A stretch of DNA of 64,000 nucleotides from Macrostomum lignano. Its lineage: Eukaryota. Numbering within the stretch: the first letter of the stretch is position 1; every line of letters begins with the position of its first letter. The position numbers and the translations under genes were made by a program. This document shows, piece after piece, positions 31,804 through 61,759 of the stretch. The notes under the pieces were generated by a model. The model ran no database searches, was not told the DNA's origin, and was given only the letters and a program-made list of their open reading frames with translations. The DNA is taken from NCBI GenBank assembly GCA_002269645.1, contig NIVC01002011.1, forward strand, positions 124,001 through 188,000, written 5' to 3'.

Positions 31804-31805
31804 TA

Positions 31806-38437: not shown

Positions 38438-41400
38438 TCAGTCGGACGGCCGGACGTCCCATGGTGCGCTTTCGTCAGTGTTGATTACCTGGCGATAAGT
38501 AGAGAAGATGAGGATAAGCGTGTGTAAAAATGATGTAAATAACTGCGTAAAGGTGGTTTCTAACATGACCGACACTAAACAAAAACAGACAGGATCACCT
38601 GTCGTAACAGACAGGATCACCTTCTTAAGCTGAAACTTCGCAAAGTCTAAGCTGCACAAGATTAAAATTTCACATCTTCGAAAACAGAAAAATTCAGTCA
38701 CTTCTACTCGCTCAAACCAAATTGTAAAAAAAAATTCGCTGTTACTTATGAAAGCTCGATTAAAACGAAATTCGACTTTCGAGTCACCGCTCCTCCAGGG
38801 AGACCCGACAATTTTTAGCACCTGTAATATGTCAGGAGTAATAATGCGACAGGGCTCTACCCTGAGGTGCATGCGGCCAGCCCCATATATTGATAACCCC
38901 AGAACCGGTTCGTGGTCAGGTTCGTCAGAGCAACCGGACGGGATTTGTACCCTAGCAACCCTAGCAATCAGAACAAGCTGTACAGGAAGGACCTCAGGAC
39001 CCGCCCTGACTGGCTAGCTGAATGGGCGGAAGCTAGGCCATGATCAGCCATGATCTCCTTGGTCTCAACGAGCCCTCAACGGGTTTCCCCAGGCACTCAC
39101 CTCAGCCACCAGCCCACCTCCACAGGCCAGGCGGATTCGCTCCGAGGTCGCCGGCGAGTCCAGCTGGAAGCTGAGCTGGCCCTGATGACCGTTCGGAAGC
39201 TCGACCTGGCTGTCCAACCTGGCCGCCAGCACCGCCTGCCTGATGGCCGTCAGCACCGAGGCTGCCAGGTTCAGCGGCGGCTCGCCGACCGCCTTGGACG
39301 AGTGAACGGCTTTGGGGTGCTCGCAGCGGCTGCCTCTCAGCAGGCGGATGTTCAGCTTCTCCGGGATGTCAGAGAAGCCAGGAATTTTGTAAGCGCCGGG
39401 CCCGCGGGTCAAGAGGCGGCCATCGGGCGAGTAGCGAAGGTCTTCGATGGTGTACAAGCCGCAGCCCTGCGTGAAGGCGCCTTCCACCTGGCCGATGTCG
39501 ACAGCCGGGTTGAGGCTGGCGCCGAGATCCATAACGATGTCGCAGCGTCGGATCACGTGATCGCCGGTCAGGGCGTCGATTTCCACCTCAGAGCAGGCGG
39601 CTCCGTAGGTGAAGTAGAGGGCAGAGTCGCCCCGGCCGCTGCGCCTGTCCGCGTCCTCCTTGGGCGGATTGAAGCAGAAGCCGCAGGCCGAGAGGCTGAC
39701 GCCAGCCAGGTAGGCGGCGCCAACCCAGTCCTCCCAGGCGGCGGTCGGGTTCGCCTCGACGAATGGCGCCAAGCGTCGGCGCAACTGCAGGCAGGCGTCG
39801 AGAACAGCCGGAGCGTTGATGTCGGTTGTTATGGAAGCGGCCGATGACGTTGTGTTTGGAACCTGTAAAGAGGCGTTGATAATTATTTGTAGTGCACAGA
39901 ATTATTCCCGCCCGCTTAAGAGTGCATCAATGACAAAAGCGCGAGTACGAGTGAGGTACATGTACTAAAGCACGGCTTGGTCGTGTGTCCACGCCCATAG
40001 ACACTCGTGCGCTACGCGCACTCGTGTTATGAGCGTTGCTACACTCCGAGCCGTGCTTTAGTTACATTGTTTTTCTGTCCGTGCATCAATGCCGTCCTTA
40101 AGTTTTTCTTATTTTGCGTTTTGTCTATGGTAGTGTTCAGCGCCGTTCCGGGGGTGTGGGGCGGAGCCCCCACATAAGCCAGCTAAAATTTAATATTCAG
40201 AAAAATTGTATGTATATACTTATGTCTATGGTATGAACTAAATGGTTCGTACTATTTCACTTTTACCAGACCATAGACTATGTCCTACGAAACATTGCTA
40301 TATAGATAGTGAGTTAAGGAAACGAGAAAGGATTTCTCAGTTGACGAGCTGTAAAAATGACTACGGCCCGGCTTCCTCATTGGGACGCTTTCCCTGGCGG
40401 AATGATAAGTGGACTTACTGGCGCCGAGATCGAGAAGTACATGGATAATTCGTTCCTGTCCTTTTTCTCTCTCTCTCCACCCTTCTCTGTGACCCCCCCC
40501 CCCTGGTCCAGCCGATCAGCTCTGTCCTGCGCGGCACGCTGATTGGCTGGGCTTGACTATCGTCTGCTCTGTCTCTTCCCCGTTTTGGGTATTTATTATG
40601 CCATCTGGGTTCCCCAGTCCATGCACTAACTTGGGCTCCTGTGGCGATTTGCTCTGACTGTACCACATCGACCGTCTCTAACTGCCAATAAACAATCGAA
40701 CCCAGTAACAGCCAGCTATAAGTACACGACCGGTAGGCTCTGTCTCCTGCGATCTTTCGGGATTGTCATATCCGCTACTAGGTCTCATACATGTATGTAT
40801 TTATGATAGGGTCACTATATACCTTTTTTATATTTGATCGCCTGAGCATCCCAATGCCCCGCTTAATACAATCGTAACACTAATTTATTTTATAGTACTG
40901 GGGCTGAAAACCCAAATTAACCCTCGTTACTAGAAAGTCATCTACTATACTCAAACCAGAGCTATTCTGTCTCAGCTATGCTCAAACCCTGCCTCTGCTA
41001 TCGCTGTCTCTAGATCAAAAGAATCCAACCTTGTCCGTGGAAGTCTCTGCAATGTACAGCCGCCCGATGGGCAGTTGAAGAGCCCTGGCGGCTACCTGGA
41101 GCAGCTTGGTGTGCACCCCCTGGCCCATTTCCACTCCGCCGTGACAAATCAGCACGGAGCCGTCCAGATAGATGTTGACAGTGGCTCCGCTCTGCAAGAG
41201 GAATTTTTTGCCCATGCTGATGCTGTAGGCGATAGGGCAGAGGGACAGACCGCGTTTCTTGTGCCGGCTGGCGTGATTGAAGACCTCAAGCTCGCGCAGG
41301 CGGCCATGATAGTCGGAGGCGGCCAGGCACTCCTGCCAGCAGCGCCACAGGTTGTCGCTCTTCACCGGAGCTCCGTTCGGCGTGATCTCGCCGGAGCGGA

Positions 41401-44400
41401 ACAGGTTCAGCTCGCGAATCTGGCACTGCGAGAGGCCCATGGATTCGGCCAGGTGTGACACCGCCGTCTCCATGATGGCGCAGGCCTGCGGAGTGCCAAA
41501 CGCCCGGAAGGCCGTGTTGGAGGCGAGGTTGGTGCGGCACAGCCGGATCTCAATGCTCAGGCTGGCTAGCCGGTAGGTCTCCATGCAGGCGTGCAGCATC
41601 CGTCCAGCCACCTGTTCGGACATGTCCAGCGTACAGCCGGCGTTCAGCAAGATGAGCAGGCGCAGCCCGATCAGCCGGCCGTCTCTGTCCGCTGCCAGCT
41701 TGTAGCGCGCCTTGACTGGGTGACGACCTCCGGACACCGCCATGTCGTCCCAGCGGTCCAGTACGGCCCGCACCGGCCGGCCGAACTTCAGTGCGGCCAC
41801 CGCAGCCGGAGTGGCGAGCTGGCTCGGCCGCGTCTCTTTGCCGCCGAAGCCGCCGCCGATCCGCTTGACCTTCACCACGATGCGATTCCTGGCCAGCCCC
41901 GTCACCTTGGACAGGTCGCTCTGCATGCCGCTCGGGTTCTGACTGGTGGCGTAAACTAGCAGCTCCGAGCCGCCGTCCTTAGGCTCCACCAGGACGGAGA
42001 AGGGCTCGAAGTAGAAGTGCTCCTGGCCTCCGACATTCATCTCGCCCTCAACGCAGTGCTCAGCCGTGGCGAACGCCTCGTCAACATCGCCAACAGTCAG
42101 CTGCTTCCAGTGTTCCTCCGGAAAGAAGCTGTCGTAGGCGGCCGCGTTTGAGATGGTGACCACAGGCAAGCGCTCCGCAGGCCCGTACTGCACGCGCACT
42201 AAACGGGAAGCTCGACGCGCCGTGTCGCGGTCCGCGGCCAGCACACCCGCCAGGAACTGGCCAGTGAACATCACGTCGGAGCTTGCGAAGACCGGCTCGT
42301 CATCGAATGCGTAGCCGTACAAGTTGCTGCCCGGAACGTCTCGGCTGTCCACGAAACCGGCCACGCCGTCCATCGCCAGGGCGTCCGTAAAGTCGATGCC
42401 GACCACCGTCGCTCTGGCCCGGTCGCTCATCACCGGCGCCAGGAACAGCTCGCCGGTGGCCGCCTGTGCGTCGTCAGTGTACATGGCTTCTCCCGTCACC
42501 TGGGCGATAGCGCTAGCGTGGGAAACTGGCCGCCCCACGAGGTCCTCGATCGGTTGGTCTGCCGGGACGGACTCAAACACCTGCGTGGCCGACAGTGGTC
42601 GTCGGTCGAGTTCGTCTACAGCGGACACGTCGAACGGAAGTCCGACGTCGCGGCAGACGCGCTGGTAGAAGCGGAACAGCATCGAGGCGGCTAGCGTAGA
42701 CCGGTAGGCGGCCTGTCCTCCCGGAGCGCCCCAGGCGACCGCAGCCTCTGTCTTCAGCTGGCGCAGGCCCGCCTCCAACGCGTCGCCGTCCTCCCAGCGG
42801 CGCCCGACCATGGCGGCGGCGGCCTGTCCAGCCGACAGCACAGTTGGCGCCAGACCGCCGAAGCAGAGACGAGCGGCGGCTACTTGATCTCCGCCGGGCC
42901 CCAGGTCGACCCAAATTGCTGCGTTCACGATGGCGATGTCGTCCTCTTTTCGCCGAGCCTGCTTGACGGCGTAGCAGTGCTGCCGCTCGGAGCAGAAGGG
43001 TATCGACACACTGCGCAGTACCTCGTCAGGCCTGGCCGCCGTGCGTCTGTAGCCGACGAAGAAGCTTTGGTCCGCTGCCACGTTGCGCTCTCCGCCTGCG
43101 GGCAAAGCAAGGATCCTTATGGGTTGTCATGGGGCTCTGCGGTTTATGAACATGATGTGGTTTAATGAAACGGTGCATGTTCTCGTAGAGATGGCTTAGA
43201 CAACAGCTCAGACTCACGCAGCGACGCCAGCGTCAAGGTGGCTCCTAGAGCTCCGAGAAGAGGAATCAGGTCCGAGATCGGGCTGGCTGTCATTACATTG
43301 CCGCCGATTGCCTGCAGAAAAAGCAAAAGTCGGTCAGTTTCCAGATGAAGGCGAATCAGGCCGACAGTTGACTCACAGAGACCAAAGAGTCAAGCAGTCT
43401 TGCCCGTTCCCCCGCCCATCTCAATTACCGCAACGTTGCGGATCTGCGGCCCGGCAAACTGGTCCAGCATATCCAGCAGGGCCCGGCAGCCGCGCTTCTG
43501 GTGCTCCAAGGACAGCCCACCGGCCTTGGCATCCGAGCACAGGCGCCGGCACAGCTGCGCCAGGCGTGTTAGGCTTACGCTGGCGCCAATCACAAAGCCG
43601 GCGGGTGTCGCCTCCATTGACGTCAGCTCAGGCACGCCGGAAGTGCAAATTAGATGCGGATAAATGGCGCCCTTCTGCTTGGTCTCGATGCCTGGGCATG
43701 GTTCATTCGGTGAGGTGCATTGCATTTATCTAAGATACTGAAATTCATTCTACAGATATGATATTGGTACTACTGACAAGAAAGCCACATATATTGGTGC
43801 AACTGACAAGATAGCCACAGATTTTGATACTGTTGACACGATACCCACTGATATTATCGGTACTAATTACAAGATTCCAACTACCAGTAATCCTACTGGC
43901 AAGCATTCATGATCTGTGAACCAAAACTCACCAATCTCGCTATTTCCCACAACCAGCTTAGCTTCGGGGTGCTCAGATTTGAGCTGCAGAAGCCGCTCCA
44001 GGCTGACTGGCCGATGCCACGTGACCCGATCTGAGGTGAAGCGTAGCTCACTTGCGTCGTACCGGTCCGTCAGCTAGATGAATTTAAATTGGCGATTTGG
44101 TTAAACTAAATTCCAGAACAAATGCACAGCTTTCAATCCCGGTTCGAAATCGAACAACCTGCAGCTCGCTGGGGAACAGCGGCTCCTGGCTGGGATCGTA
44201 AGGCAGCAGGTCGGTCGTGTCAAACAACTCCGTTGCCACCCCGGAGCCCTTTGCATCCATGCAGCATCCGGAGGAGCCTCGGCCGCCGCCGCAGCAACCG
44301 CTGCTGTCGCCGCCGCCACCGCAACGCAGAGACCTCAGGCCGTCCAGTATGGGTCGATAGCCGGTACAGCGGCATAGGTTGCCCTGAAGACTGGCCGTCA

Positions 44401-47400
44401 GCTCGGCGTCTGTAGGATGTGACCGCTCTCGCAGCAGGCTGTAGGCGGACATCAGGACGCCGGGCGTGCAAAAGCCGCACTGGGAGCCGTGCGCCCTGGC
44501 CAGGCGCTCCTGCACAGCGTGCAGCGCCCCGCTTCGCCCGATGCCTTCGATAGTGGTGACGGAGGCGCCGTGCACCGAGCAGAGGGGCGCCAGACAGGCG
44601 TTGACGGCGAGGTGCAGCGGCGAGTCGGCCCGCCGGTCCCATCGAGAGATCATCACGGTGCAGGCGCCGCAGCCGCCCTCTCCGCAGGCGAGCTTTGTGC
44701 CGGTGAGATGCACTGGGGGCGGAGCGGGTGAAGGGCAATTTACTGTTAGCTTGGCAGAAGGCCAGGTTTAAGCTAGTCCGAGAAAAGACGAAGTGGCTAA
44801 AGCTAAGCGAGATATTTTATATTTTATAGTGCCGTCTACGCTAGAGAATGTGCACTGAGAATAAAACAAATGAGTGGACGAGCACAGGAGAACGAAGATG
44901 ATGTTTCCTAATTGAGAATGAAGATTGAGAATTGAGAATGGATAAAAATGCAGATTTAACTAATGTTTCAATGCGAGCGGCGACAGGTTTGTTCGACTAG
45001 AACTGCCTAACAAAAAAATTAGGCGGTCTCCGATTCTTCTCAGAGCGACGACGCCCAGCAGTCGTCGACTCGTCCAGCAGTTCGTCCAGGTCCGTCGCGC
45101 TTTAACAGTACTGGGCGGCCGACCGTCTTCTGCTGCATGCGGGCCCGCTCTCCCTTGTTCAGGACTCGGACGCGTATGTTATGGGAAATTCGTGCAGCTT
45201 GCTGAGGACGCCCGCAAAGCCCCCTGCTGCTATCACAGCTAGCACAGACGGAATCCCTTGTAGAATTCCGGAATCTTCCGCACTGGAGGCGCCGAAAAGC
45301 GCTGACTTCAGCTTCTGTAGGGCCAGTTTGCACTCCGTATTTCACCGTAGCTGCCGCCCCTTCTGAGCTGTTTGATGTAGTGGATTTGCGATGCTGGCCA
45401 AGTGTGGGACGAATTGGGCAGAAGCTCATCGTACCAACAAGCCGATGAATGTCTTCGGCGCAATCAGGAGTTGGGATGGACTGGATGGCGCTGATCTTGT
45501 TCTGAGTTGGCTGAATCCCCTTGGCAGATGTTTTTTGTCCCAGGTACTCAGCTCCGGGTTGATTTTGAATCCAACCTATTTATCAGTTTCTTCATCAGAT
45601 CCTTGAAGCTTTGCAGCTTCAAATTTGTTAATTGCCTGATTAGAGCTCCAAACTCAGGCGCTCAGATTGCAGACGTCCACTGGCAGGTTGCCATCAACGC
45701 TTGACACCACGAGCGCCCTGTTCGGCAGCAGGCCCGTCTTGTCGATGAAATCAGAGCTGGGCTTAAACTGATCCTGCTCGACGGACGACGGCACCTTTAC
45801 CGGGATTATGACGCAGACAGGTATCGTCACAGTACTGGCAAATCATTTGGGCACCACTCGGCAGGCTGGCGCGGGGCTTCTATCATGAAAAATGGAGATC
45901 CTGGTTGACCCAAGCTGAACAGAAGACATCCGGAGGTCCACTATGAAACTTGAGCATATCTTGCCGATGGCGTCGAAGCCGAGTACGCATTTCTGTTGGA
46001 TATCGACAACCACCGTCCGCTGATGCTCTGTTGGCGGCAGACCACCGGCGGCAGGCCAGCGTTGCACTCCCTGGAGACTCCAAGCGTTGGCGTGCAGATG
46101 TTGGATAGCCACCTAGAATCAGTTGAAGAATCTTCCTGGATGCTGCCCCTGTGTCAGGCTCATTTTCCTCTTTCACGTGAATTGCCGCGGCTGCTGATTG
46201 TGGTGACTGGTCGCGGCCAGGTCTGCCAGCTGCTCCTGCATCTGCTCCAGTCGATCAGATACTTGATTGCTAACTGATATCAACGCTTGCAGAGGCTTCC
46301 TTGCTGCCGATGCTCTTCAGCTTTGTAGCAAATAGGTTAATTCCATGGAACTTAAATGCACTTCAATTTCAGAGCTGACTTTGTCACAATCGGGCTCTTT
46401 CGGTAAAACTTCGAGAATTCTCCCTAGGTAGCAGTGCTACAAAATCTTCGAACATCTGCAGCCACATGTTAATGTTGGCATCGTCTGCACACAAAAAATT
46501 AGGTGGCAAAAGTTCATTCACATGCGCCATGAGTGAGCCGGCTCGAGTTAGAGACCGCTGCCACCGATGTACGACCCTAGCCAATGTACCCTGAGTAAAA
46601 ACACAAAACTGCACGCTCACACGAGAGAGCGAAATTGATGTCGTTTGCGGTACGAAGACGGCTTGGCTGTCAAATCGCCGTTGGAGGCAATTTAAATTGG
46701 GAAACGGTTTTGTGTAGAAGGGTGTAGAATGTCTTTTAGATATTATTCGTATTAGAGTATTGGCTGATTATCTAAAGTTCAATTAAAATAGTTAATAATT
46801 AAATGTACTTTTATGCATAACAAGAAAAAATAGCAAGTGTTACATTTTCGCCGCAGATACGAGATTAACGTCTCTTCCGGATCCGGTGCGGATTCCACAA
46901 TCTGAAAAAATAGAAGTACGATACTCTATACGCACTACTTTCACAAAAAACAGTAGTATTTATGACCTATCATATTGCCTGTCTTGTTTTTTCTAGTATT
47001 CACAGAGACTAATTTATTTAAGTAGCTGATAATACTACATAAAATGGTTTCCAGCTCCTAGGGTCACTGCAGTTTGAAGGCCCAAGCTATAGAAGTGCAC
47101 TAGAAACTAAGAAAAACGAAAAAGAAAATTTTCAGCGCGACGTTCTGGGTCGATAATATTCATGAACTCAGCGTGCAAACGTGCAGTACACAGTTTGGCA
47201 CCACTGACTCCCAATTAATCTCCCCTGACACTCAATTAGGTACCCCTGGCACTCAGTTAAGTGCCCCGTGACGCTCAATGACGCCCCTGACACTTAATTA
47301 GGCGCCCTCTGGCAATTAGGCGCCCCTGACACTTAATTAGGCGTCCTCTAGCAATTAGGTGCCCCTGACAATTAAATGCATCTGACACTCAGTTAAGCGC

Positions 47401-47536
47401 CCCGTGGCACTCAATTAGGCGCCCCTGACACTAAAGTTGCTACTATTACTAACCCTGGGTTTGGCCATCCGGAAGAATTTCGTCAATTCAAACTTACCTT
47501 CATCTGATTAACATAGAATACGAGTTTGGTCTCCAT
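38438..47536 (-). CDS. XDH: Xanthine dehydrogenase/aldehyde oxidase family molybdo-flavoenzyme, paralog 1, 9 exons, 1342 aa
   Basis: Exons (5'->3'): 47498-47536, 46844-46901, 44159-44712, 43932-44073, 43429-43691, 43218-43311, 41030-43095, 39101-39862, 38438-38488 = 4029 nt. All introns are GT-AG with consistent phases. Motifs: [106 protein letters not shown]-terminal PWDVR. Confidence 0.95.
39961..40066. mobile_element. ~105-bp hairpin element (GCACGGCTTG...CCATAGACACTCGTGCGCTACGCGCACTCGTG...AGCCGTGC); second copy at 48171-48271
   Basis: Terminal inverted match TGTACTAAAGCACGGCT/AGCCGTGCTTTAGTTACA. Absent from the equivalent intron of paralog 2. Confidence 0.7.
40490..40750 (+). mobile_element. 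Possible solo-LTR/regulatory block in XDH intron 7, shared with 55705-55960
   Basis: Both paralogs keep the order GATTGGCTG (CCAAT), TATTTAT(A/T), then CAATAAACAAT, while the surrounding intron is poorly alignable. Confidence 0.4.
45040..46620 (-). mobile_element. Deleted Gypsy-like LTR retrotransposon relic inside intron 2 of paralog 1 only
   Basis: gag start [13 protein letters not shown]...[10 protein letters not shown]; RT thumb-like [19 protein letters not shown]; TEAEVSAF..L; C..C. PBS-like TGGCAGCGG at 46563-46555. Intron 2 is 2131 bp here versus 271 bp in paralog 2. Confidence 0.65.
47200..47432. repeat. ~21-bp degenerate minisatellite (CACTCAATTAGGCGCCCCTG) in XDH intron 1; counterpart at 60955-61138
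   Basis: About 9-10 units in each paralog, so it predates the duplication. Confidence 0.85.
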
Positions 47537-48089
47537 GTCCAAACGGTCTCCGAGTAGATTCAGATGTATCGACTGAGTTTCAATAGAGTTAAAACAGAAT
47601 ATTACAGAGTTTAAATATTTAAACTCACTCTAAGTCAATCCCACCTTTATCTGTAGTCATGGAATACTAGACTTAGAGACGTCTGGCTTGCCCCCCCATG
47701 CATCTTGTAGGGCCCTGCATAAGAGTGGCTGTGTGCGTCGCCACCTTATGAGTGGCCCTAGGAGAATGACTGCTAAAGTAACTGCGCTTAGATTTAGCGC
47801 AGCTATAAGATAACGAACCACATGCCAGTTATATTACTCTTCGTGCTAGTCTCCGCTCAGTGTTCGTTGCTCTCGTTTTATGATAATCGGCTTTTAATTT
47901 CCCATTTTTTCATTCCTTGTACGCAATTGAAGTGCATTTAAGTTCCATGGAATGTACCTATTTGCCAGCCGATACTTTACTCACGAGTCGTTTCCCCACC
48001 GGGTGTTACCCACCCGCCGGTAAATTGCTTTATTGTCAATTTCAAACAATGATCGGTCATTGCTTGACATGTCATTGCCTTAACGTAAA

Positions 48090-49555
48090 TTACCATAGAA
48101 ATTTTGAACAATGACGCATTAATGCACGCTAATTGATCTTTCATATGGTCTTCTCAACAGTTGGCAATTCGATAGATGCACGGCTTGATCTTGCAATAAT
48201 GCCATAGACACTCGTGCGCTAACGCGCACTCGTGGTCTAGGCATCGTTACACTCTCAAGCCGTGCACTATCTCTCCATTGTTTGAAATTGACAATGGAGG
48301 AATCTAGCACGCTGACGAGTGCGTCAATGGCTGAAACACGAGTGCGCGTAGCGCACGAGGGTTTTTGCCATAGACGCACAAGTCAAAGTGCTTGATTCCC
48401 ATTCTTATTTGATCCAACATGTGTGGCTAAAGTAGACAAGGGTGGAGCTGGGGGTGTGGAGGTAGACTTGAACCATAGACAAAATATGCGCGAGCTAGTC
48501 TGAACATTCTTGCACGATTGAAAGAAGATTATGCTTGTAGTCTATGGCTGTTATGCTAAATATAGAAACATTGCGCATTACATTCTTGCACGATTGACAT
48601 TCCTGCACCGAGTGCACATGCAAATTCAAGGTGCTTTTACCATAGACACTTGCATTTCTGCACGCATATGGCGACTTCCAAAGCATTCTTGCACGCTGGA
48701 TCAAATAAGAATAAAGCAATTTACCGGCATATCATTTTAGAAAACGAACGAGTCTATGAGCGTAAAATAAAATAGTCTATGGTTGCAAGTGGCGGGCTTC
48801 GCCCCCACACTCCCATTCCCTCTTCCCACTCGGATCCTGATGGAAAAATTGACCAATAAAGTTAGCTGGAAATGAGAAAACATGGTAATGGCCATAGACA
48901 CTAGCAGCGATACTTCCAGACAACCCCCATTGTTTAGCAATTTGACGATCATTATTCACATTTTTAATGCAGAACAATCCATTACTACAAACAATGCATT
49001 GTCTGTAGGATCGTCAAACAGAAAAACAATGCAAAGAATCAGCGGTCGCAGTGTTTGAGCGTATGAGCTCCTACCGGCGCTCGCCAGACAATCGTTGTCA
49101 CGCACTGGGACCGCTGATTATTTATTTATCCATTGTCTGCACGCTGATTGACGCTTCAGTAGCCAGCATGCAAAAATGCAAGATTGTCTGCACGCTGGTT
49201 GATTTACCAAGATTTTTATATAAAGTGCTTTAACGTCTATGGTAAAAATCATGATTAACTGCATTCACTTGCTGGCTATACCATTCGGCAACGACGGCCA
49301 AATAGTACATTAATACCCATGCTTTGCGGGCGTTAATAAATCAGAGGGCGCCCTCTGATTTTCCCATTAACGCCCTTAAAGCATGGGTATTACTATTTTT
49401 GTGCCATAGACATTTGTGTCCTTGACAAAGTGGGACAGAATAATCGGGCGTTAAAGTGAAATACCGACCCCAAACCCATAGAATATCTTATACTTAACTG
49501 CCCGCTAATTTCGATATTTCTTTCCTGCAAGCGGGCTTAAATGTAGTCTATGGCA
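48090..49555. other. Cluster of CCATAGAC/GTCTATGG-bounded short modules
   Basis: Exact 8-mer at 48202, 48368, 48473, 48540(r), 48640, 48775(r), 48892, 49235(r), 49404, 49546(r), plus variants at 48093, 48752 and 49476. Confidence 0.85.
49301..49397. repeat. ~97-bp near-perfect hairpin (MITE-like)
   Basis: TAATACCCATGCTTT...GGGCGTTAAT AAATCAGAGGGCGCCCTCTGATTT ...ATTAACGCCC...AAAGCATGGGTATTA. Confidence 0.85.
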
Positions 49556-50162: not shown

Positions 50163-50575
50163 GCCACTTCTCATTAAGTTCGCAGGACTAGTCTCTCCCA
50201 CTTCTCACCAAGTTCGCAGGACTAGTCTCTCCCACTTCTCACCAAGTTCGCAGGACTAGTCTATCCCACTTCTCACTAAGTTCGCAGGACCAGTCTATCC
50301 AACTTCTCACTAAGTTCGCAGGACCAGTCTATCCAACTTCTCACCAAGTTCGCAGGACTAGTCTATCCCACTTCTCACCAAGTTCGCAGGACCAGTCTAT
50401 CCCACTTCTCACCAAGTTCGCAGGACCAGTCTATCCCACTTCTCACCAAGTTCGCAGGACCAGTCTATCCCACTTCTCACCAAGTTCGCAGGACTAGTCT
50501 ATCCCACTTCTCACCAAGTTCGCAGGACTAGTCTATCCCACTTCTCACCAAGTTCGCAGGACCAGTCCATCCCAC
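50163..50575. repeat. 34-bp tandem repeat x12 (CCACTTCTCACCAAGTTCGCAGGACTAGTCTATC)
   Basis: AAGTTCGCAGG at 50176, 50210, 50244... to 50550; no spacers. Confidence 0.97.
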
Positions 50576-51124
50576 GCCGCTTCAACTTGGTGCGTCAATT
50601 TGCCGCATTATGACAGCAGTTTGATTTTATACATTTTATCATTTTTATGAGTTGAGTAGCCTCATTGACACATGAAGTAGAAGGAAACTAAATTTTATTT
50701 TGTTTCAAATGAACTAAGCAATGCACGGTACCTATGTTTTGATCTATGTTTTGCAAAAGTTGAGCCGAGAAATTTCGCCACAGGACTGCGCACTCGGCCA
50801 TGGACAATAGAGCCAATGAACTGGGCAGCTCGCAATTCTCAGCCGTACTCTCAGACAGACTGCGAACCAAGCCAAGTTGCTTAGGATCTGGGATGGTGGC
50901 CCAGCTATTGAGGATCTGAGAACCTGGTAGCCCACTTCGGGCCCAGGTTAGCTAAGTTGTGTATTGTTAATAATTATTTTGCTCTATTTTAGTCACGCGT
51001 TTTGCAATGTACTTTTTGATAGTTAGAGTTTCTTTTTAGTGTAAACAGGCCAAAACAGCTAGACGCAAATTACCAGTCAAGAGTGACTCAGCGGAGGGTC
51101 GACAGTTCCAGTGTACCCCGGCTT

Positions 51125-51295
51125 AGCGCGGCCAGCCAATCACAATCGGCCTGGACCCCTGGCACGCGGCAAAACAAGTTTTACCCGGCCTGAGAGAGCG
51201 CCGCGATTCGGCTTAGCGAGCGGCCGGCCAGACACCCACCACCCGGCTTGAGGGGGGGGGTTGAAAGGTTTGGAAGTGACTATATAGGAAAGTGT
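51125..51295 (+). promoter_or_regulatory. CCAAT + TATA promoter-like/LTR-like segment
   Basis: GCGCGGCCAGCCAATCAC (~51127), a G9 run, and GACTATATAGGAA (~51279). A similar GCGCCGGCCAGCTAATCA plus G run occurs at ~34340-34382. Confidence 0.35.
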
Positions 51296-52184
51296 GTTTT
51301 GGCGGTCGGATCTCATGCTCGTTTTCTCTTATGTTTGGCTCCTCTGGTTTTTCCCATTTCCCGGCCGTTCTACCTTTTGTCGCGCTTTGAGGCGCTCGAT
51401 TTAAATCGACCCCCGGTCTTTGCTTTGTTCCCCCGCCCAACCGCAATAGTCTTGCTGGCGTAACGCTCGCGATAACCTTGTCCAGAGAGCGTCGTTGGCA
51501 AGCGCGGTTAGATAGGAACTGACGGTTTTGACACAGTACGTGGCCTCGACCCCGAGGGCCTCAGTGTTGCACTGAAGGGCAGAGCTGGTAGGACTTGCCA
51601 GAGCTCCGCTGAACTGTCAATCCGTCAGGGTCCTCGCCTGAGAGTAGGCTTTGGGTTTAGGCCGGTGGTTAGGGATCTTTCTCCGTGGTCCTGTGTTCGG
51701 TTCTCTTTCTTCCGTCTTCTTCCAGAGCTGAGATCCGCTCACCAAGTTTGCGTCAATCATATTTTGTATTATTATCATTCGAGTTTAACTGCGTTGCGAA
51801 TTACGTTATTAAGAATTGTGTAACTATAACTTGAATTAACTAAATTAAAGCGTCAAGTCTCGTTATCAGTCATTATCAATTAGGATTATCACTCTCTAAA
51901 TCTGCCTGGAACCGCTTTCAATCGCGTTCGTTATTTACTTGTACCGTACCTGCGACTATTGCAGAAAGTCTGGTAGGACTCGCCGACCGGCGATAGGCAA
52001 ATAGGACTACATGCTCCAACATAGGTTTGTCTAGGGCCTAATCTATTTGCCGTATCGCATTTATTTCATCACACAGACCAATTTGTCTTTTTGCTGAATC
52101 AGGCCCGGGCACACCCTAAAAGCCCAGAAGTAAAGTATACCACAGAGTTCTGCTAGTTTCTGTTTAAACCTTTTTTACCCACAA

Positions 52185-52550
52185 ATGGATTCTAAAAGTG
52201 AAGCTTAAAGAAAAGGAAGTGAAGAAAAGAAAAGCTAAAAAAGGACGCCCTGCACAGAACAGACTACATGGAACTCGATTCCCGATTCGGAAGACGCATT
52301 ATCAATGGACGACTCGAAGCAGATTAAGTCAGAAACGGAGTCGGAAAGCATGGATTCAGAATCTGATGAGAGCCAAGATGAGGCGACTAATGGGTTGAAG
52401 TAGCCCCTGGAAATGACAACTTGTTTGACTTACATGTAGACGGGGTGCCGAAACTCCCAGGGTTTTCGACAATCAATCCAAACATCGATCTACCAGAGAA
52501 TGCAGACGAGGGTATAACAGACTTTTTTCACTTTCCTGAACTGAAGAGTT
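52185..52550 (+). pseudogene. Possible piggyBac-type transposase N-terminal relic
   Basis: Acidic Ser/Asp/Glu tract followed by WVEVAPGNDNLF...PKLPGFSTINPNIDLP...DFFTF. Frameshifted; no TTAA ends found. Confidence 0.3.
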
Positions 52551-52695
52551 TCTCAACAGTCTTATCACATGGAAATACATGATGGTCTTTTTCATACTGG
52601 GCACTTGCTTTAGTGAATGGGGAGATGGTTTTTGATGCCATAGGAATTTTTTAATCTCTGGGCTTTTGGGCCGTTTTGGTATGGCATGCGGTGCA

Positions 52696-53585
52696 TTTTC
52701 CGTTCAATTTAAACAAAACTCGCATTCTATTTCGGCAAGCTGATATTCGATTTCATTATTCGACATTTAGCGACTTCAACCGTCATTCGAATTCGGCAAG
52801 GACCCATTCAATTTCGGCAAGCAACATTTAATTTTGGCAATTAGATATTCTATTTCAGACCATAGAAAGATATTCTAGTTCATTCTGTCTATGGACAAAA
52901 CTTTCTCCTGATTTCCCATTCAATTTCGGCATGCAGCAGTCAAGTTCAGCACAACACTTTGGCGCGCTGTTTTAGTGTACTGTATAATCTTCAACAGCCT
53001 CCCTCTCAAACTAAACAACAATACTGTACCTGTCTATGGCCCTCTCTATAGCATCCCTCTTTAAACTGAGTGCTCTCCTTGAAGTTCGTTTCCAGAAGAC
53101 AGAAGCTTCATGTACGGGAGCATGCACTGATTTCATTTTTGAAGATATATAGCGAATAAGAAGAAGAATGAGCGACGAGAAGTTCGAAGAAACAGAAGAA
53201 GAAGATATCGGTGACGAAGATGATGAGATTGAGCCCCGAGGGCCATACGGACGAATGCCTGATGGAGACAGAGCCCACCTTGACGCACACGAGAACAGGC
53301 AGGATTATGTCCATCTGGCGCAACTCAAGAAGCCGCCTCTGCATCTGCCCTCGTACCTTCGGCTTCATGTTTAAATTGAATGCTGCATACCGAAATTTAA
53401 TGGGAAACCTGCATGCAGGAGCAAATTTTGTCCATAGACAGAATGAACACCGTCACTATGGTATGAAATAGAATGTCCATCAAAATTGGAATGACGGTTG
53501 ATCGAAGTAGCTAAATATAGAATGATGAAATTGAATGTCATTTTGCCGAAATATAATTCGAGATTTGTTGAAATTGAACGGAAAA
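52696..53585 (+). mobile_element. ~890-bp DNA element with 43-bp TIRs, subterminal TTTCGGCAAG repeats and a short acidic ORF (53168-53374)
   Basis: Left TTTTCCGTTCAATTTAAACAAAACTCGCATTCTATTTCGGCAA matches the reverse complement of 53543-53585 at 39/43. Superfamily not identified. Confidence 0.7.
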
Positions 53586-54221
53586 GGTGTGGTGACATTT
53601 AAATTAAGTATTCTGGTCTCAGAGCTTCATTTTTAAACTTGCGTGCTGATTTTTAATTGAACGTACAATCCGCTGGATTGATTGACTTATTAAATCACTT
53701 TTATACTGTTAAGTACAGTTTAAAAGTAAATACGGTTCCCAGAAAAAAACAGTTAACATATTAAATATTGCTCACAGGATGAAACAGAGTTCACAGAAAG
53801 TATCATTTACAAATTTAACACACAAAGTTCACGGAAAAAGCACTGTCGTATCGGTTGACAAAACAATTAGCAAGTGAAAAAAGTTTACTTAAATTAATGA
53901 TATTTTTCTTCATTTTAATACCTAAGAAGTCAAATTAATTTTATGCCTGGCGAATATTTTTAACCAAAAGTAAGTTTATTTATAAGATATAAAACTTCAC
54001 TTGTATAATTTTTATTCTCGAATTACTCGGATACATAAATGAATTAAATTTTTGTCCCAGGATCTCTAAAAAACAAAGCAGCACGGCAACAAAAAATGTT
54101 TGTGCACCAAGTTCCTTTCTCATGCATATGCCTCTGATTTATTGCATAGAAACGAGCATTGCATTTTAATTAAAAGCCAGCATGCCAAGTTTCCTACAAA
54201 TAGCACAGCGGCCCGTGCAGC

Positions 54222-57200
54222 TCAGTCGGACGGCCGGACCTCCCATGGGGCGCTTCCGTCAGTGTTGCTCACCTGGCGTCAATTGATGAGGGTAAAGGCA
54301 TGAGTAAAAATGATGCGAAGGATTGCAAAAACTATTATTCTCACATTGCCAACGATGAATAAAAAAGGATTGTGATGGATGGGGTCACTTCAAATTGTCA
54401 AAAACAATCGCTAAAGTTACTTTCAAAAGATCGGTTTCAACAAAATTTCGAGCTTCAAGTCACTGCTCTTGAAACTCGACGTCTGGACAATTTTTTAGCA
54501 TCTATAATATTGACAGGCTGCTCCGGCCCAACCATGCTTTACCCTGAATAAATCGTCTTTTGGCCATGGACAAATCGTTTTGGTTTAAATGAGCCCTCAA
54601 CGGGTTTCCCCAGGCACTCACCTCAGCCACCAGCCCACCTCCGCAGGCCAGGCGGATTCGCTCCGAGGTCGCCGGCGAGTCCAGCTGGAAGCTGAGCTGG
54701 CCCTGATGACCGTTCGGAAGCTCGACCTGGCTGTCCAGCCTGGCCGCCAGCACCGCCTGCCTGATGGCCGTCAGCACCGAGGCTGCCAGGTTCAGCGGCG
54801 GCTCGCCGACCGCCTTGGACGAGTGAACGGCTTTGGGGTGCTCGCAGCGGCTGCCTCTCAGCAGGCGGATGTTCAGCTTCTCCGGGATGTCGGAGAAGCC
54901 AGGAATTTTGTAAGCGCCGGGCCCGCGGGTCAGGAGGCGGCCATCGGGCGAGTAGCGAAGGTCTTCGATGGTGTACAAGCCGCAGCCCTGCGTGAAGGCG
55001 CCTTCCACCTGGCCGATGTCGACAGCCGGGTTGAGGCTGGCGCCGAGATCCATAACGATGTCGCAGCGTCGGATCACGTGATCGCCGGTCAGGGCGTCGA
55101 TTTCCACCTCAGAGCAGGCGGCTCCGTAGGTGAAGTAGAGGGCAGAGTCGCCCCGGCCGCTGCGCCTGTCCGCGTCCTCCTTGGGCGGATTGAAGCAGAA
55201 GCCGCAGGCCGAGAGGCTGACGCCGGCCAGGTAGGCGGCGCCAACCCAGTCCTCCCAGGCGGCGGTCGGGTTCGCCTCGACGAATGGCGCCAAGCGTCGG
55301 CGCAACTGCAGGCAGGCGTCGAGAACAGCCGGAGCGTTGATGTCGGTTGTTATGGAAGCGGCCGATGCCGTTGTGTTTGGGACCTGGAGAGGTGTTGAAA
55401 TCTATTGCAATGCACTGAATAGCCTGTCTCAGAAGCCCTGTTACATTGTGGTGCCTACGCACTTATTGTTGATTTGGGGTGCCTGCGCACTTGTGCTGGC
55501 GCTGGATAACCTTCAGCTCTAGTCCGTGCTGGCTGGTCGCCAGTCGATTGGCTGGTCCGGGGGCTCCCTCGCTCTCTCTCTGTTTCTCTCAGTTTCTCTC
55601 CCTCTGTTTGGGACCCGGCTTTCCTTCCCCCCAGCTTTTCTGCAGTTGATTGGCCAGTCCTCCCTGCCCTTTTTCTCTCTTTCCACCTTCTCAGTGACCC
55701 TTCCTCTTGGTCCAGCCGATCAGCTCTGCCTTGCGCGGCGCGCTGATTGGCTGGGCTTGGCAGTCAGTCGTCTGCTGTCTCGCCCCAACCTTTTTTGGTA
55801 TTTATATTGCCGTCTGTTCTCCTCCTCCCCCTTCGCTACCTTGGGCTCCTGTGGCGATTTGCCCTGCTCTGTGCCGTTTGACGGTCTTTTACTACCAATA
55901 AACAATTTAACCCAGTAACGGCCAGCCATAAGTAATACGACCAGTAAGCTCTATCTCCTGTGTTTTGTCCTGTGTATGAGATTGCCAGATCCGCCACAAG
56001 TTCTCATATGTATTAAGTATATATGTTGGAATGTGCTCAGGCTTGAAACATTTGAGCTGGAGCTCGCCAAGATCATAAAAATTGTTCTAATAACTAGTAG
56101 GTCTATTGCGCGTCCCAACGCTTCTGTACCCAGGCTGTACGAGCTACTGGGCTAGGAACCCAAATCGACCACCGTTACTACGCAGTCGTTTGCTATGCTC
56201 AAACCTGCGCTGTGCTGTCTCTGCTATGCTTAGCTCATAAGCTGCCTTTATACTTTTAGCTATGCTTAGGTTCCATATGGAAGAACTTCAAGCAATGTCC
56301 CTTTGTCTCAAAAGAATCAAACCTTATCCGTGGAAGTCTCTGCAATGTACAGCCGCCCGATGGGCAGTTGAAGAGCCCTGGCGGCTACCTGGAGCAGCTT
56401 GGTGTGCACTCCCTGGCCCATTTCCACTCCGCCGTGACAAATCAGCACGGAGCCGTCAAGATAGATGTTGACGGTGGCTCCACTCTGCAGGGGGAATTTT
56501 TTGCCCATGCCGATGCCGTAAGCGATGGGGCAGAGAGACAGGCCACGTTTTTTGTGCCGGCTGGCGCGGTTAAAGACCTCAAGCTCTCGCAGGCGGCCAT
56601 GATAGTCGGAGGCGGCCAGGCACTCCTGCCAGCAGCGCCACAGGTTGTCGCTCTTCACCGGAGCTCCGTTCGGCGTGATCTCGCCGGAGCGGAACAGGTT
56701 CAGCTCGCGAATCTGGCACTGCGAGAGGCCCATGGATTCGGCCAGGTGTGACACCGCCGTCTCCATGATGGCGCAGGCCTGCGGAGTGCCAAACGCCCGG
56801 AAGGCCGTGTTGGAGGCGAGGTTGGTGCGGCACAGCCGGATCTCAATGCTCAGGCTGGCTAGCCGGTAGGTCTCCATGCATGCGCGTAGCATCCGGCCGG
56901 CCACGTTCTCGGACATGTCCAGCGTACAGCCGGCGTTCAGCAAGATGAGCAGGCGCAGCCCGATCAGCCGGCCATCTCTGTCCGCTGCCAGCTTGTAACG
57001 CGCCTTGACCGGGTGACGGCCTCCGGACACCGCCATGTCGTCCCAGCGGTCCAGTACGGCCCGCACTGGCCGGCCGAACTTCAGCGCGGCCACCGCAGCC
57101 GGAGTGGCGAGCTGGCTCGGCCGCGTCTCTTTGCCGCCGAAGCCGCCGCCGATCCGCTTGACCTTCACCACGATGCGATTCCTGGCCAGCCCCGTCACCT

Positions 57201-60200
57201 TGGACAGGTCGCTCTGCATGCCGCTCGGGTTCTGACTGGTGGCGTAAACTAGCAGCTCCGAGCCGCTGTCCTTTGGCTCCACCAGGACGGAGAAGGGCTC
57301 GAAGTAGAAGTGCTCCTGGCCTCCGACATTCATCTCGCCCTCAACGCAGTGCTCAGCCGTGGCGAACGCCTCGTCAACATCGCCAACAGTCAGCTGCTTC
57401 CAGTGTTCCTCCGGAAAGAAGCTGTCGGAGGCGGCCGCATCTGAGATGGTGACCACAGGCGAGCCCGCCGCAGGCCCGTACTGCACGCGCACCAAGCGGG
57501 CAGCTCGACGCGCCGTGTCGCGGTCCGCGGCCAGCACACCCGCCAGGAACTGGCCAGTAAACATCACGTCGGAGCTTGCGAAGACCGGCTCGTCATCGAA
57601 TGCGTAGCCGTACAAGTTGCTGCCCGGAACGTCTCGGCTGTCCACGAAACCGGCCACGCCGTCCATCGCCAGGGCGTCCGTGAAGTCGATGCCGACCACC
57701 GTCGCTCTGGCCCGGTCGCTCATCACCGGCGCCAGGAACAGCTCGCCGGCGGCCGCTTGCGCGTCGTCAGTGTACATGGCTTCTCCCGTCACCTGGGCGA
57801 TAGCGCTAGCGTGGGAAACTGGCCGCCCCACGAGGTCCTCGATCGGTTGGTCTGCCGGGACGGACTCAAACACCTGCGTGGCCGACAGTGGTCGTCGGTC
57901 GAGTTCGTCTACAGCGGACTCGTCGAACGGAAGTCCGACGTCGCGGCAGACGCGCTGGTAGAAGCGGAACAGCATCGAGGCGGCTAGCGTAGACCGGTAG
58001 GCGGCCTGTCCTCCCGGAGCGCCCCAGGCGACCGCAGCCTCTGTCTTCAGCTGGCGCAGGCCCGCCTCCAACGCGTCGCCGTCCTCCCAGCGGCGCCCGA
58101 CCATGGCGGCGGCGGCCTGTCCAGCCGACAGCACAGTTGGCGCCAGACCGCCGAAGCAGAGACGAGCGGCGGCTACTTGATCTCCGCCGGGCCCCAGGTC
58201 GACCCAAATTGCTGCGTTCACGATGGCGATGTCGTCCTCTTTTCGCCGAGCCTGCTTGACGGCGTAGCAGTGCTGCCGCTCGGAGCAGAAGGGTATCGAC
58301 ACACTGCGAAGGACCTCGTCAGGCCTGGCCGCCGTGCGTCTGTAGCCGACGAAGAAGCTTTGGTCCGCTGCCACGTTGCGCTCTCCACCTGCGGGCAAAG
58401 CAAGGGTCCTTATGGGTTGTCATGGGGCTCTGCGGTTTATGAACATGATTTGGTTTAATGAAACGGTGCATGTTGTCGTAGAGATGGCTCAGACAACAGC
58501 TCAGACTCACGCAGCGACGCCAGCGTCAAGGTGGCTCCTAGAGCTCCGAGAAGAGGAATCAGGTCCGAGATCGGGCTGGCTGTCATCACATTGCCACCGA
58601 TTGCCTGCAGAAAAAGCAAAAGTCGGTCAGTTTCCAGATGAAGGCGAATCAGGCCGACAGTCGACTCACAGAGAGCAAAGAGTCAAGCAGTCTTGCCCGT
58701 TTCGTTGACCCCTAAGCTTTTCCATTTACTTTAGTACATTCCCTGCTGCCCTCATGGGCGAGAACTGCACAAGCATCACAGCCTAATTCATGTTGGGCTC
58801 GAGCCCCAAATTACATGTGGCTGCGCACAGAATCGAGTCTAACTACTTTGAACGCGTCAAACGCGTTAATCACTGAGCTACCCTGCTAACTCGCAGTTTG
58901 AGCTGGTTCCCCAGCCCATCTCAATTACCGCAACGTTGCGGATCTGCGGCCCGGCAAACTGGTCCAGCATGTCCAGCAGGGCCCGGCAGCCGCGCTTCTG
59001 ATGCTCCAAGGACAGCCCGCCGGCCTTGGCGTCCGAGCACAGGCGCCGGCACAGCTGCGCCAGGCGTGTTAGGCTTACGCTGGCGCCAATCACAAGACCA
59101 GCGAGTGTCGCCTCGATTGACGTCAGCTCAGGCACGCCGGAAGTGCAAATTAGATGCGGATAAATGGCGCCCTTCTGCTTGGCCTCGATGCCTGGGCATG
59201 GTTCATTCGGTGAGGTGCATTGCATTTATCTAAGATACTGAAATTCATTCTACAGACATGATATTGCTACTACTGACAAGAAAGCCACAGATTTTGATAC
59301 TGTTGACACGATACCCACTGATATTATCGGTACTAATTACAATATTCCAACTACCAATAATCCTACTGGCAAGAATTCATGATCTGTGAACCACAACTCA
59401 CCAATCTCGCTATTTCCCACAACTAGCTTAGCCTCGGGATGCTCAGATTTGAGCTGCAGAAGCCGCTCCAGGCTGACTGGCCGATGCCACGTGACCCGAT
59501 CTGAGGTGAAGCGTAGCTCACTTGCGTCGTACCGGTCCGTCAGCTAGATGAATTAAATTGGCGATTTGGTTAAACTAAATTCCAGAACAAATGCACAGCT
59601 TTCAATCCCGGTTCGAAATCGAACAACCTGCAGCTCGCTGGGGAACAGCGGCTCCTGGCTGGGATCGTAAGGCAGCAGGTCGGCCGTGTCAAACAGTTCC
59701 GTTGCCACCCCGGAGCCTTTTGCATCCATGCAGCATCCGGAGGAGCCTCGGCCGCCGCCGCAGCAACCGCTGCTGCTGTCGCCGCCGCCACCGCAACACA
59801 GAGACCTCAGGCCGTCCAGTATGGGCCGATAGCCGGTACAGCGGCATAGGTTGCCCTGAAGACTGGCCGTCAGCTCGGCGTCTGTAGGATGTGGCCGCTC
59901 TCGCAGCAGGCTGTAGGCGGACATCAGGACGCCGGGCGTGCAAAAGCCGCACTGGGAGCCGTGCGCCCTGGCCAGGCGCTCCTGCACAGCGTGCAGCGCC
60001 CCGCTTCGCCCGATGCCTTCGATAGTGGTGACGGAGGTGCCGTGCACCGAGCAGAGGGGCGCCAGACAGGCGTTGACGGCGAGGTGCAGCGGCGAGTCGG
60101 CCCGCCGGTCCCATCGAGAGATCATCACGGTGCAGGCGCCGCAGCCGCCCTCTCCACAGGCGAGCTTTGTGCCGGTGAGATGCACTGGGGGCGGAGCGTG

Positions 60201-61242
60201 GGCGGGTCTACTTATAGTGTACGGAGACGGATGGGTGTAGAGCTGTGAGATTAGAATGGCAATGTACATTGCGGACGGGTGGATGTATAGAGCTGTGAGG
60301 GGGAATGGAGGCAATGTGCACTGAAAAGCGATTTGGTGTAAAGGGGTTTAGCCTGTGTTGGGACATATTAGAGTATTGGTCGAATTATCTACAGTTCAAT
60401 TGAAAGGGCCCGTGTACTTTTATGCATAACAAGCAAAAATAGCAAGTGTTATTACATTTTCGCCTCAGATACGAGATTAGTGTCTCTTCCGGGTCCGGTG
60501 TGGGTTCAACGATCTGGAAATTATATAATTAGAATATTTTAGTGCTAGCTTGTACTACTTTTCAAAAACATACAGTAGTATTATGACGCTATCACAATGC
60601 CTGGTTTCTTTTTTTGAGTCTTCACAGTGACTAAATTATCTAAGTAATTGATAACAGTACATAAAATCGTTTCTAGGGTTACTGTAGGTTGAATTCTCAA
60701 ATTATAGTGCACTGAAAACGAAGAAAAACGTAAAAGAACATTTTGAGCAAGATGCGCTTGTTCGATAAATTCATGAGCTCTGGTTGCAAGCCTACAGTAC
60801 GCAAGTGAGCTATATAATGGGTTAGGGGTTAACAGTTGAGTGAGAGATAACGCGAGATAGAGGCGCTTCAAAGAGCGAGCGATAACAACAGGTGGGGGGC
60901 TGCGAGTAGCTGTCGCAGACCCTAAAACTAAGAGTACAAGACAGTGGCAGCTCCTATCCTGACACTCAGTTAGGCACACCTGACTATCAATTAGGCGCCC
61001 TTGGCACTCAATTAGGCACCCCTGACGCTCAGTTAGATGCCACCTAACACTTAATTAGGCGCCCTTGACCCTCAATTAGGCGCGTCGTGACAAATCAATT
61101 AGGCGCCCCTAGCACTCAATTAGGCGGCCCTGGCACTAAAGCTGTCACTATCACTAACTATTAGTATTGGCCATCCAGCAGAAAGTTTTCAATCCAAGCT
61201 TACCTTCATCTGATTAACGTAGAATACGAGTTTGGTCTCCAT
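54222..61242 (-). CDS. XDH: Xanthine dehydrogenase/aldehyde oxidase family molybdo-flavoenzyme, paralog 2, 9 exons, 1343 aa
   Basis: Exons (5'->3'): 61204-61242, 60456-60513, 59628-60184, 59402-59543, 58929-59191, 58511-58604, 56323-58388, 54622-55383, 54222-54272 = 4032 nt. All introns GT-AG, same phases and motifs as paralog 1. Ends [16 protein letters not shown]. Confidence 0.95.
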
Positions 61243-61759
61243 GTCCATCGGTCTCAGAATAGAATCAAGTGTATCTATAGAGTTTCAGTATAGAGTTAAA
61301 ACAGAGTATAACGGAGTTTAAATATTTAAACTAAACTCCAAGTCGATCCCGCCTTATCTTTAGAGCACAAATTTAACCACCCTGTCTTAAATTACACCTG
61401 CAGTCATGGAATACTAGACTTCCATGGAACGACTGATAAAGTGCTGGCCTCTGAACTTTGCCAGTTTAATAAGCATTCAGTAACTTACGAGAGTAGAGTT
61501 GCGCAGTCAAAATGGAAAATTCGCTGTGAATAATGACGTAAAATTACGCTCGTAAGATTAACGAAACACATGCACGTTCAACCGTTCATTAGAGGACTGC
61601 TCCTTTGAAAGATAGTCTCCTGCTCAGATTTTCATTCCCGTACGTTTTCCAAGTCGACTCCAACAATAACAGGCAGACGAAACCCGAGCTCGTGAAGGCG
61701 TATTCAGCATGCCAGTAAAGTACACGTATGAGACAGACCAGGCCTATGGACTAAGGTCT

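Follow-up and report, generated by a model that had tools for sequence, protein, structure and literature searches.

Tandem xanthine dehydrogenase-like genes with a non-canonical predicted substrate pocket and a gene conversion mosaic in Macrostomum lignano

A 64,000-nucleotide stretch of the Macrostomum lignano genome (contig NIVC01002011.1 of assembly GCA_002269645.1, positions 124,001 to 188,000; hereafter the window) carries two neighbouring xanthine dehydrogenase (XDH)-like genes, here copies A and B, which lie head-to-tail on the minus strand and have intact reading frames. We propose that this tandem pair encodes nicotinamide adenine dinucleotide (NAD)-dependent enzymes of the XDH family with a non-standard substrate pocket, and that the two genes form a gene conversion mosaic in which islands of old divergence lie on pocket loops; judged from the sequence, we put the probability of this reading at roughly 0.55. 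The comparison suggests that the two enzymes prefer different substrates and that neither has the standard preference; an altered substrate specificity is plausible.

Gene models and family assignment

A BLAST comparison of the window with itself revealed a duplicated unit (38432-47656 versus 54216-61363, in direct orientation), beyond which the window shares only simple repeats with itself. Translated searches (tblastn) with homologs as queries detected a matching series of minus-strand coding blocks in both units, and the two gene models were assembled by hand from these matches and by reading splice sites at the junctions. Copies A and B have eight exons apiece, every intron is of the GT-AG type, and there are no internal stop codons. 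The models are as follows.

39065 to 47536, minus strand: copy A, XDH-like gene; ATG at 47536, stop codon at 39065-39067, 1337 residues; from tblastn matches, splice sites and the assembled open reading frame.
47536-47498, 46901-46844, 44712-44159, 44073-43932, 43691-43429, 43311-43218, 43095-41030 and 39862-39065, minus strand: exons of copy A.
54502 to 61242, minus strand: copy B, XDH-like gene; ATG at 61242, stop codon at 54502-54504, 1366 residues; from the same three lines of evidence.
61242-61204, 60513-60456, 60184-59628, 59543-59402, 59191-58929, 58604-58511, 58388-56323 and 55383-54502, minus strand: exons of copy B.
54505 to 54588, minus strand: 28-codon C-terminal extension of copy B; the TGA stop codon of copy A is TTA in copy B.

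The original prediction, made from the letters of the sequence, had described two near-identical tandem XDH paralogs with about 30 differences between 38438 and 61242. The description is accurate: the proteins are 98% identical, long DNA stretches are 99-100% identical, and the copies are separated by 26 substitutions, one indel of a single codon, a terminal R/H difference and the 28-residue C-terminal extension of copy B. Position 61242 is exactly the start codon of copy B, and 38438 lies about 630 bp past the stop codon of copy A, some 6 bp away from where the duplicated unit ends on its 3' side. The extension of copy B is read from diverged 3' sequence after loss of the ancestral stop codon. 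The C-terminal peptide of mammalian xanthine oxidoreductase (XOR) is inserted close to the flavin adenine dinucleotide (FAD) site and influences the equilibrium between XDH and xanthine oxidase (XO) (PMC3509653); by analogy, the extension could be of functional consequence.

When copy A was searched against the PDB (phmmer), full-length matches to rat, human and bovine XDH structures were obtained with E=0. In the bovine alignment (also E=0), XDH residues 5-1310 corresponded to query residues 4-1320. XDH structures scored 1248 bits, versus 1064-1084 bits for structures of aldehyde oxidases (AOXs). Domain order and length are like those of eukaryotic XDHs (bovine, rat and human XOR; PDB 1FO4, 1WYG and 2CKJ), and the Pfam set of the homologs is PF00941, PF03450, PF01315, PF02738 and PF20256. 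All eight Cys ligands of the two N-terminal 2Fe-2S domains are present in both copies, the motif NLCRCTGY among them, and the molybdenum-centre residues Glu1261 and Gln767 (bovine numbering) are found as E1266 and Q769 in copy A and as E1267 and Q770 in copy B. The closest of the 120 homologs listed is 44% identical over exon 7, and matches in metagenome contigs reach no more than 40%. The assignment of both proteins to the xanthine oxidase family of molybdo-flavoenzymes is secure as far as sequence can establish it; each would carry FAD, a molybdenum cofactor and two 2Fe-2S clusters.

The electron-acceptor side of the predicted enzymes is conventional. Alignment with rat and human XDH (human and bovine numbering is identical for residues 201-528) revealed that both copies keep Phe337, Tyr393, Arg394 and the loop A residues Asp429 and Asp430, in agreement with the dehydrogenase-type FAD motifs noted originally. 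The NAD-type FAD site of canonical XDH is likewise recognizable in both, as FFVGYR, FAGPQ and the acidic loop A. Arg394 is, as we take it, a residue of the NAD site and Asp430 a residue of loop A. Phe337 stacks on the flavin, Tyr393 belongs to the NAD site and Asp429 to loop A (PMC3509653). The elements that make mammalian XDH and XO interconvertible are absent from both copies: the R335/W336/R427/F549 cluster is altered (R335D, W336Q, R427K and F549L), and the Cys535/Cys992 pair is lost through C992R and through deletion of the linker segment that holds C535. Because these switch elements are absent, copies A and B are predicted to be stable dehydrogenases, and no mammalian-type XDH-to-XO conversion should be expected of them.

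The predicted substrate pocket

Bovine numbering was anchored on PDB chain 3eub_C (bovine XO, residues 737-1332; chain index plus 570), in which Q767, E802, L873, S876, R880, F914, F1009, T1010, V1011, L1014, P1076, A1078/9 and E1261 were all found at the expected positions. Copies A and B were aligned with this fragment and with 120 database homologs; the alignment is free of gaps over residues 870-887, 908-919, 1000-1018 and 1072-1082. Both copies keep Q767, the purine-recognition pair Glu802 and Arg880, F914 and E1261, and the earlier statement that E802, R880, F914 and E1261 are retained thus holds with this numbering. These residues, together with F337, Y393, R394 and D429/D430, are shared with the eukaryotic XDHs. 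Both proteins look competent for catalysis.

Around the retained residues the pocket is altered. Both copies carry F1009M, T1010G, G913A and G916T, as originally predicted and as verified against 3eub_C and the homologs. Departures common to both copies that had been missed are L873M, H884A, K1004A, V1011K, P1012K, N1015L and T1077S, which along with the preceding four distinguish the pair from the eukaryotic XDHs, and also E879G, F1005Y and K771G. With gaps excluded, position 913 is G in 120 of 120 homologs, 1009 is F or Y in 117 of 117, and 1077 is T in 111 of 111; N1015 is found in 112 of 115 and L873 in 113 of 119. The residues that copies A and B have at these five positions occur in none of the homologs. 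Of the 23 highly conserved columns in the pocket, copy A departs from the consensus in 7, and of 236 such columns elsewhere in 24 (Fisher p=0.011), so that deviations are about three times as dense in the pocket as in the rest of the protein. No homolog has more than four deviations in the 23 pocket columns, the runner-up being an AOX-like springtail protein in which R880 is lost. The channel-mouth loop at 648-649, also weighed as a peculiarity of the pair, varies so much among the homologs that it is uninformative.

In XDHs the purine is sandwiched between Phe914 and Phe1009, and the Phe1009-Thr1010 motif is conserved in all characterised XDHs, those of bacteria included (PMC5746545; PMC3311054). 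Copies A and B keep F914 and have Met at 1009 and Gly at 1010. Because the Phe1009/Thr1010 motif is replaced, the pair departs from canonical XDH (EC 1.17.1.4) in one defining feature of those tested, the aromatic sandwich with Thr1010. As read from the alignment, the pocket common to both copies is non-canonical. We infer that the two proteins are NAD-dependent N-heterocycle hydroxylases with a substrate range unlike that of standard XDH. The gain of Lys, His and Arg and the loss of Glu879 hint, speculatively, at a more polar or anionic substrate.

The closest functional precedent for new substrates acquired without turning into an AOX would be HxnS (purine hydroxylase II, a nicotinate hydroxylase) of Aspergillus nidulans, which is a paralog of the XDH HxA and keeps E802 and R880 (PMC5746545). 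Its change of specificity has been tied to alterations of the Phe1009-Thr1010 motif and of pocket residues close by: Phe1009 is kept, an Ala is inserted after it (FATAL), F1013 is replaced by His, and V1081 and S1082 are replaced by Ser-Gly (PMC5746545). E802 and R880 are kept in HxnS and in both copies. Unlike HxnS, copies A and B read SMGKKF without the insertion, keep F1013 and have I1081 and T1082, and no evidence of common descent of HxnS with the pair was found. Lacking the HxnS signature, the M. lignano pair would be an independent variant.

Six differences between the copies had been placed on or beside the substrate channel (A/B: 876 Q/N, 883 H/R, 1006 S/G, 1008 S/G, 1014 L/P and 1076 S/A), and every one of these residue calls was reproduced. 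At 876 and 883 the residue of either copy is found in none of the homologs, and the same is true of Pro1014 of copy B. A list of 22 ligand-contact residues was compiled, mainly from PMC8979054, and Q767 and E1261 were added to it. Three of the 26 substitutions (876, 1014 and 1076) are on this list, versus 0.43 expected (hypergeometric p=0.008), and six fall within three residues of it on either side (p=0.004). Both tests are post hoc; as they stand, they indicate that the differences are not randomly placed with respect to the channel. A literature search for 883, 1006 and 1008 as pocket residues returned almost nothing, and these three were treated as pocket-adjacent.

The gene conversion mosaic

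The divergence between the two copies was followed along the genes as identity (by sliding window and per feature) and as nonsynonymous (dN) and synonymous (dS) differences per site by the method of Nei and Gojobori. For the whole gene, dS is 0.067, dN is 0.009 and dN/dS is 0.14. These averages hide a very uneven pattern, whose segments are listed below.

41030 to 44712, minus strand: homogenised block of copy A, exons 3 to 7 with introns 3 to 6; 96-100% identical to 56323-60184 of copy B, intron 5 excepted.
39065 to 39862, minus strand: second homogenised block, exon 8 of copy A, versus 54586-55383 of copy B; holds residues 1076-1079 and E1261.
46844 to 47536, minus strand: unconverted old part of copy A, exons 1 and 2 with intron 1; 60456-61242 in copy B.
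41588 to 41617 (copy A) and 56881 to 56910 (copy B), minus strand: divergence island 1, codons 877-886, bovine residues 875-884.
41165 to 41296 (copy A) and 56458 to 56589 (copy B), minus strand: divergence island 2, codons 984-1027, bovine residues 982-1025.
42134 to 42208 (copy A, codons 680-704) and 57427 to 57501 (copy B), minus strand: mostly nonsynonymous patch, with S/A, ERL/AGS, N/D and Y/S.
39845 to 39847 (copy A, Ser) and 55366 to 55368 (copy B, Ala), minus strand: codon for bovine P1076.

At the 5' end, the 500 bp upstream of the ATG are 57% identical, intron 1 is 70% identical and exon 2 is 86% identical; exons 1 and 2 combined have a dS of 0.43. Intron 2 is mostly unalignable (2131 bp in copy A versus 271 bp in copy B). 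From exon 3 to exon 7, DNA identity is 96-98%, and introns 3, 4 and 6 (97-100%) equal the exons. Intron 5 is 88% identical over its alignable 117 bp; it measures 324 bp in copy B versus 117 bp in copy A and has a 207-bp insertion in copy B. Intron 7 drops to 60%, exon 8 returns to 98.9%, and the 3' flank is 55% identical. Across exons 3-8, excluding the two islands and the patch at codons 680-704, dS is 0.041. The longest run of identical codons is 130 (permutation p=0.011).

Since introns 3, 4 and 6 match between the copies no less closely than the exons do, selection on the protein is not the source of exon similarity, and purifying selection was rejected as its cause. The equal similarity of introns and exons points instead to gene conversion, or to a non-allelic exchange of equivalent effect, as the homogenising process. 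A simple recent duplication was also rejected, in view of the islands of old divergence, exons 1 and 2, and introns 1, 2 and 7. From the sequence, the duplication appears to be old, with a neutral divergence of about 0.4-0.6 per synonymous site where it is still visible, and to have been homogenised later to about 4%. The proposed course of events would be an old duplication followed by non-allelic gene conversion over exons 3-8 and the small introns.

Two repeat or insertion features of the introns were noted. Copy-specific insertions are present in intron 2 of copy A (44713-46843) and intron 5 of copy B (58605-58928); these gains in size probably reflect the insertion of transposons or other sequence and mark the limits of conversion tracts. 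In intron 1 both copies have a tandem repeat, at 47282-47375 and 60958-61137, that is related between them and measures about 21 bp (39 bp in copy A); as it is common to both copies and differs in copy number, the repeat predates the duplication.

Within exon 7, two stretches retain old divergence. Island 1 has five synonymous and two nonsynonymous codon differences in 10 codons (dS about 1.3) and contains 876 Q/N, R880 and 883 H/R. Island 2 has 13 synonymous and four nonsynonymous codon differences in 44 codons and spans the whole 1004-1016 loop; its dS of 0.63 equals or exceeds the 0.43 of the unconverted exons 1 and 2. When codons were permuted, the clustering of synonymous differences was significant for both (p<0.0002 for island 2 and p=0.018 for island 1). 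The islands coincide with pocket-forming segments, bovine residues 873-884 and 1004-1016, and five of the six pocket-side differences fall within them. The sixth, 1076 S/A, lies outside the islands, where exon 8 begins, and is a nonsynonymous difference standing by itself. The pocket differences thus appear, by the divergence around them, to be old and persisting and not newly arisen. The only segment in which dN approaches dS is the patch at codons 680-704, at the start of the molybdenum cofactor domain and outside the pocket, where six nonsynonymous and two synonymous-only codon differences are found in 25 codons (dN 0.12, dS 0.15).

These results modify the view that the copies are diverging from each other. 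They are real paralogs and they differ; they are not simply diverging, with a dN/dS of 0.14 and old islands in an otherwise homogenised gene (dS 0.04). Analysed segment by segment, dN/dS gave no signal of positive selection. In the mechanism that we favour, residues 876, 883, 1006, 1008, 1014 and 1076 would tune each copy differently, and the islands would survive through selection against homogenising those residues. Seen in one genome, the persistence of old divergence on the pocket loops in the face of conversion makes it more credible that the two copies are maintained as functionally distinct. A like mosaic is known from the primate red and green opsin genes, paralogs that are mostly homogenised and in which short function-defining segments stay different; that is another protein family, and selective maintenance in the M. 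lignano pair is inferred from a single genome.

Alternative explanations, surroundings and significance

The copies may instead be ordinary XDHs of a fast-evolving lineage that make urate from xanthine, with pocket drift tolerated or compensated and the islands mere neutral leftovers of conversion. We regard this as the serious rival, if on the unlikely side. It would account for the retention of E802, R880, F914, E1261, Q767 and the NAD-site residues, for the long branch and raised deviation outside the pocket too (24 of 236 columns), and for the low dN/dS. Several observations weigh against the reading we prefer. In a neighbour-joining tree the stem under copies A and B is long (0.55 substitutions per site), and the pair is off consensus at 12% of the columns that are at least 90% conserved, versus a homolog median of 1.8%, a comparison somewhat biased by the homologs' own contribution to the definition of the consensus. 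Part of the pocket change may therefore reflect general fast evolution; on the alignment, both statements appear true, that the pocket is special and that the whole protein is divergent. Gly1010 and Lys1012 are not unique to the pair, since XDH homologs of nematodes (Aphelenchoides avenae P0006 and Toxocara canis P0022), presumably ordinary XDHs, have them as well. A Met side chain can pack against an aromatic ring, so that activity on xanthine would still be possible. Residues 883, 1006 and 1008 adjoin the pocket, as far as the alignment tells, and are not demonstrated to line it. The overlap of islands with pocket loops was recognised post hoc, with a rough chance estimate of a few percent. 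There is no signature of positive selection in dN/dS, either overall (0.14) or in island 2 (about 0.065). Assembly polishing, finally, can produce homogenisation of paralogs likewise.

The nematode homologs group with the pair in the neighbour-joining tree, which may be long-branch attraction. They are 40-44% identical to it and, unlike copies A and B, keep F1009, G913, L873, H884, K1004, N1015 and T1077. What speaks against ordinary XDHs is the roughly threefold density of deviations in the pocket (p=0.011), the constancy of G913, F/Y1009 and T1077 among homologs along with the conservation of F1009-T1010 in characterised XDHs (PMC5746545), and the location of both old-divergence islands on pocket loops.

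A further possibility, which we hold improbable, is that the clustered differences came from a third, diverged member of the family, brought in by short conversion tracts. The sharp boundaries of the clusters and their mixture of synonymous with nonsynonymous changes would fit such an origin. Against it, tblastn found no third XDH copy in the window, ancestral-looking states are split within island 2 (G1006 in copy B, S1008 and L1014 in copy A), and the dS of the islands is comparable to that of the unconverted exons 1 and 2.

AOXs arose from XDHs by gene duplication followed by remodelling of the pocket, and often form tandem arrays. The original prediction had raised an XDH-to-oxidase-like trajectory for the present pair, with what would be a loss of purine specificity and NAD dependence. 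The remodelled regions 1009-1015 and 873-884 do differ in AOXs too, and copy B has its C-terminal extension. We nevertheless regard this course as highly improbable. E802 and R880 are never conserved in XDH-like AOXs (PMC5746545), and in vertebrate AOX1-4 (PDB 4UHW and 3ZYV) and insect AOX (7PX0) both are replaced and NAD+ is not used; copies A and B keep both residues, together with F337, D429/D430 of the acidic loop A and the NAD-site residue Tyr393. Retention of Tyr393 and the acidic loop argues, for an acceptor use that is predicted from sequence, against a loss of the NAD+ site of the AOX kind. The pair also scores lower against AOX than against XDH structures, and the mammalian switch elements through which an oxidase could form are absent.

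An origin of the pair as allelic haplotypes, or as a duplication made by the assembly and wrongly placed in tandem, was allowed for originally and would suit the 98% protein identity and the 99-100% identical DNA stretches. It is very unlikely, because haplotypes are expected to be collinear past the gene and more evenly diverged. Here divergence is 0-3% over exons 3-8 with their small introns versus 30-45% in introns 1, 2 and 7 and the flanks, intron 2 and intron 5 differ in size by 2131 versus 271 bp and by the 207-bp insertion, and the stop codons differ. Similarity ends at the gene edges, no more than a few hundred bp out, and the 6.5 kb of sequence between the copies has no counterpart.

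The window is eukaryotic in character, with spliced genes, transposon fragments and satellites; scans for Rfam families and tRNAs found none in it. Its other elements are these.

2 to 8013: satellite array, in which a 23-bp unit (TAGAAGCGTCATGTAAACAATCA) is repeated some 355 times with 91% matches; the AT skew is strong; the array reaches the left edge of the window and may be longer.
9185 to 9352: minisatellite, 45-bp unit, 3.7 copies.
19567 to 20064, plus strand: isolated open reading frame of 165 residues in AT-rich sequence, a suspected remnant of a hAT-type transposase.
27038 to 27645 and 27943 to 28563: inverted repeat whose arms, each about 610 bp long, share 95% identity and enclose an 18/55-bp tandem array at 27633-27893; possibly a foldback-type or terminal inverted repeat element.
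About 31800 to 33300, minus strand: stop-interrupted open reading frames with reverse transcriptase motifs of the long terminal repeat retrotransposon type, recognised by motif only.
34881 to 36840 (both strands) and 63303 to 64000 (plus strand): fragments of non-long-terminal-repeat retrotransposons of the long interspersed nuclear element type; a 394-residue open reading frame of this type matches RVT_1 and endonuclease-domain proteins, with 41% identity to the best match, which is from metagenome contigs.
37286 to 37777: minisatellite, 20-bp unit, 24.5 copies.
50164 to 50575: minisatellite between the two XDH-like genes, 34-bp unit, 12 copies.

The XDH family has gained new specificities by duplication repeatedly, as in the AOXs and the fungal nicotinate hydroxylase. 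If our reading of the M. lignano pair is true, it would be another and different route, one that retains NAD dependence and the residues for purine recognition and replaces the aromatic clamp and several near-invariant pocket residues. We advance only tentatively the stronger proposal that the pair belongs to a type of eukaryotic molybdenum hydroxylase not described before, which would keep Glu802/Arg880 and NAD dependence and abandon the otherwise universal Phe1009/Thr1010 clamp; copies A and B would then differ in substrate preference, and selection would shield those differences from conversion at the pocket loops. Should the copies be ordinary XDHs after all, Phe1009 and Thr1010 would be less indispensable than has been assumed. 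On the reading we prefer, the conversion mosaic would serve as a natural experiment, in which the residues that are still different point to the positions that set specificity.

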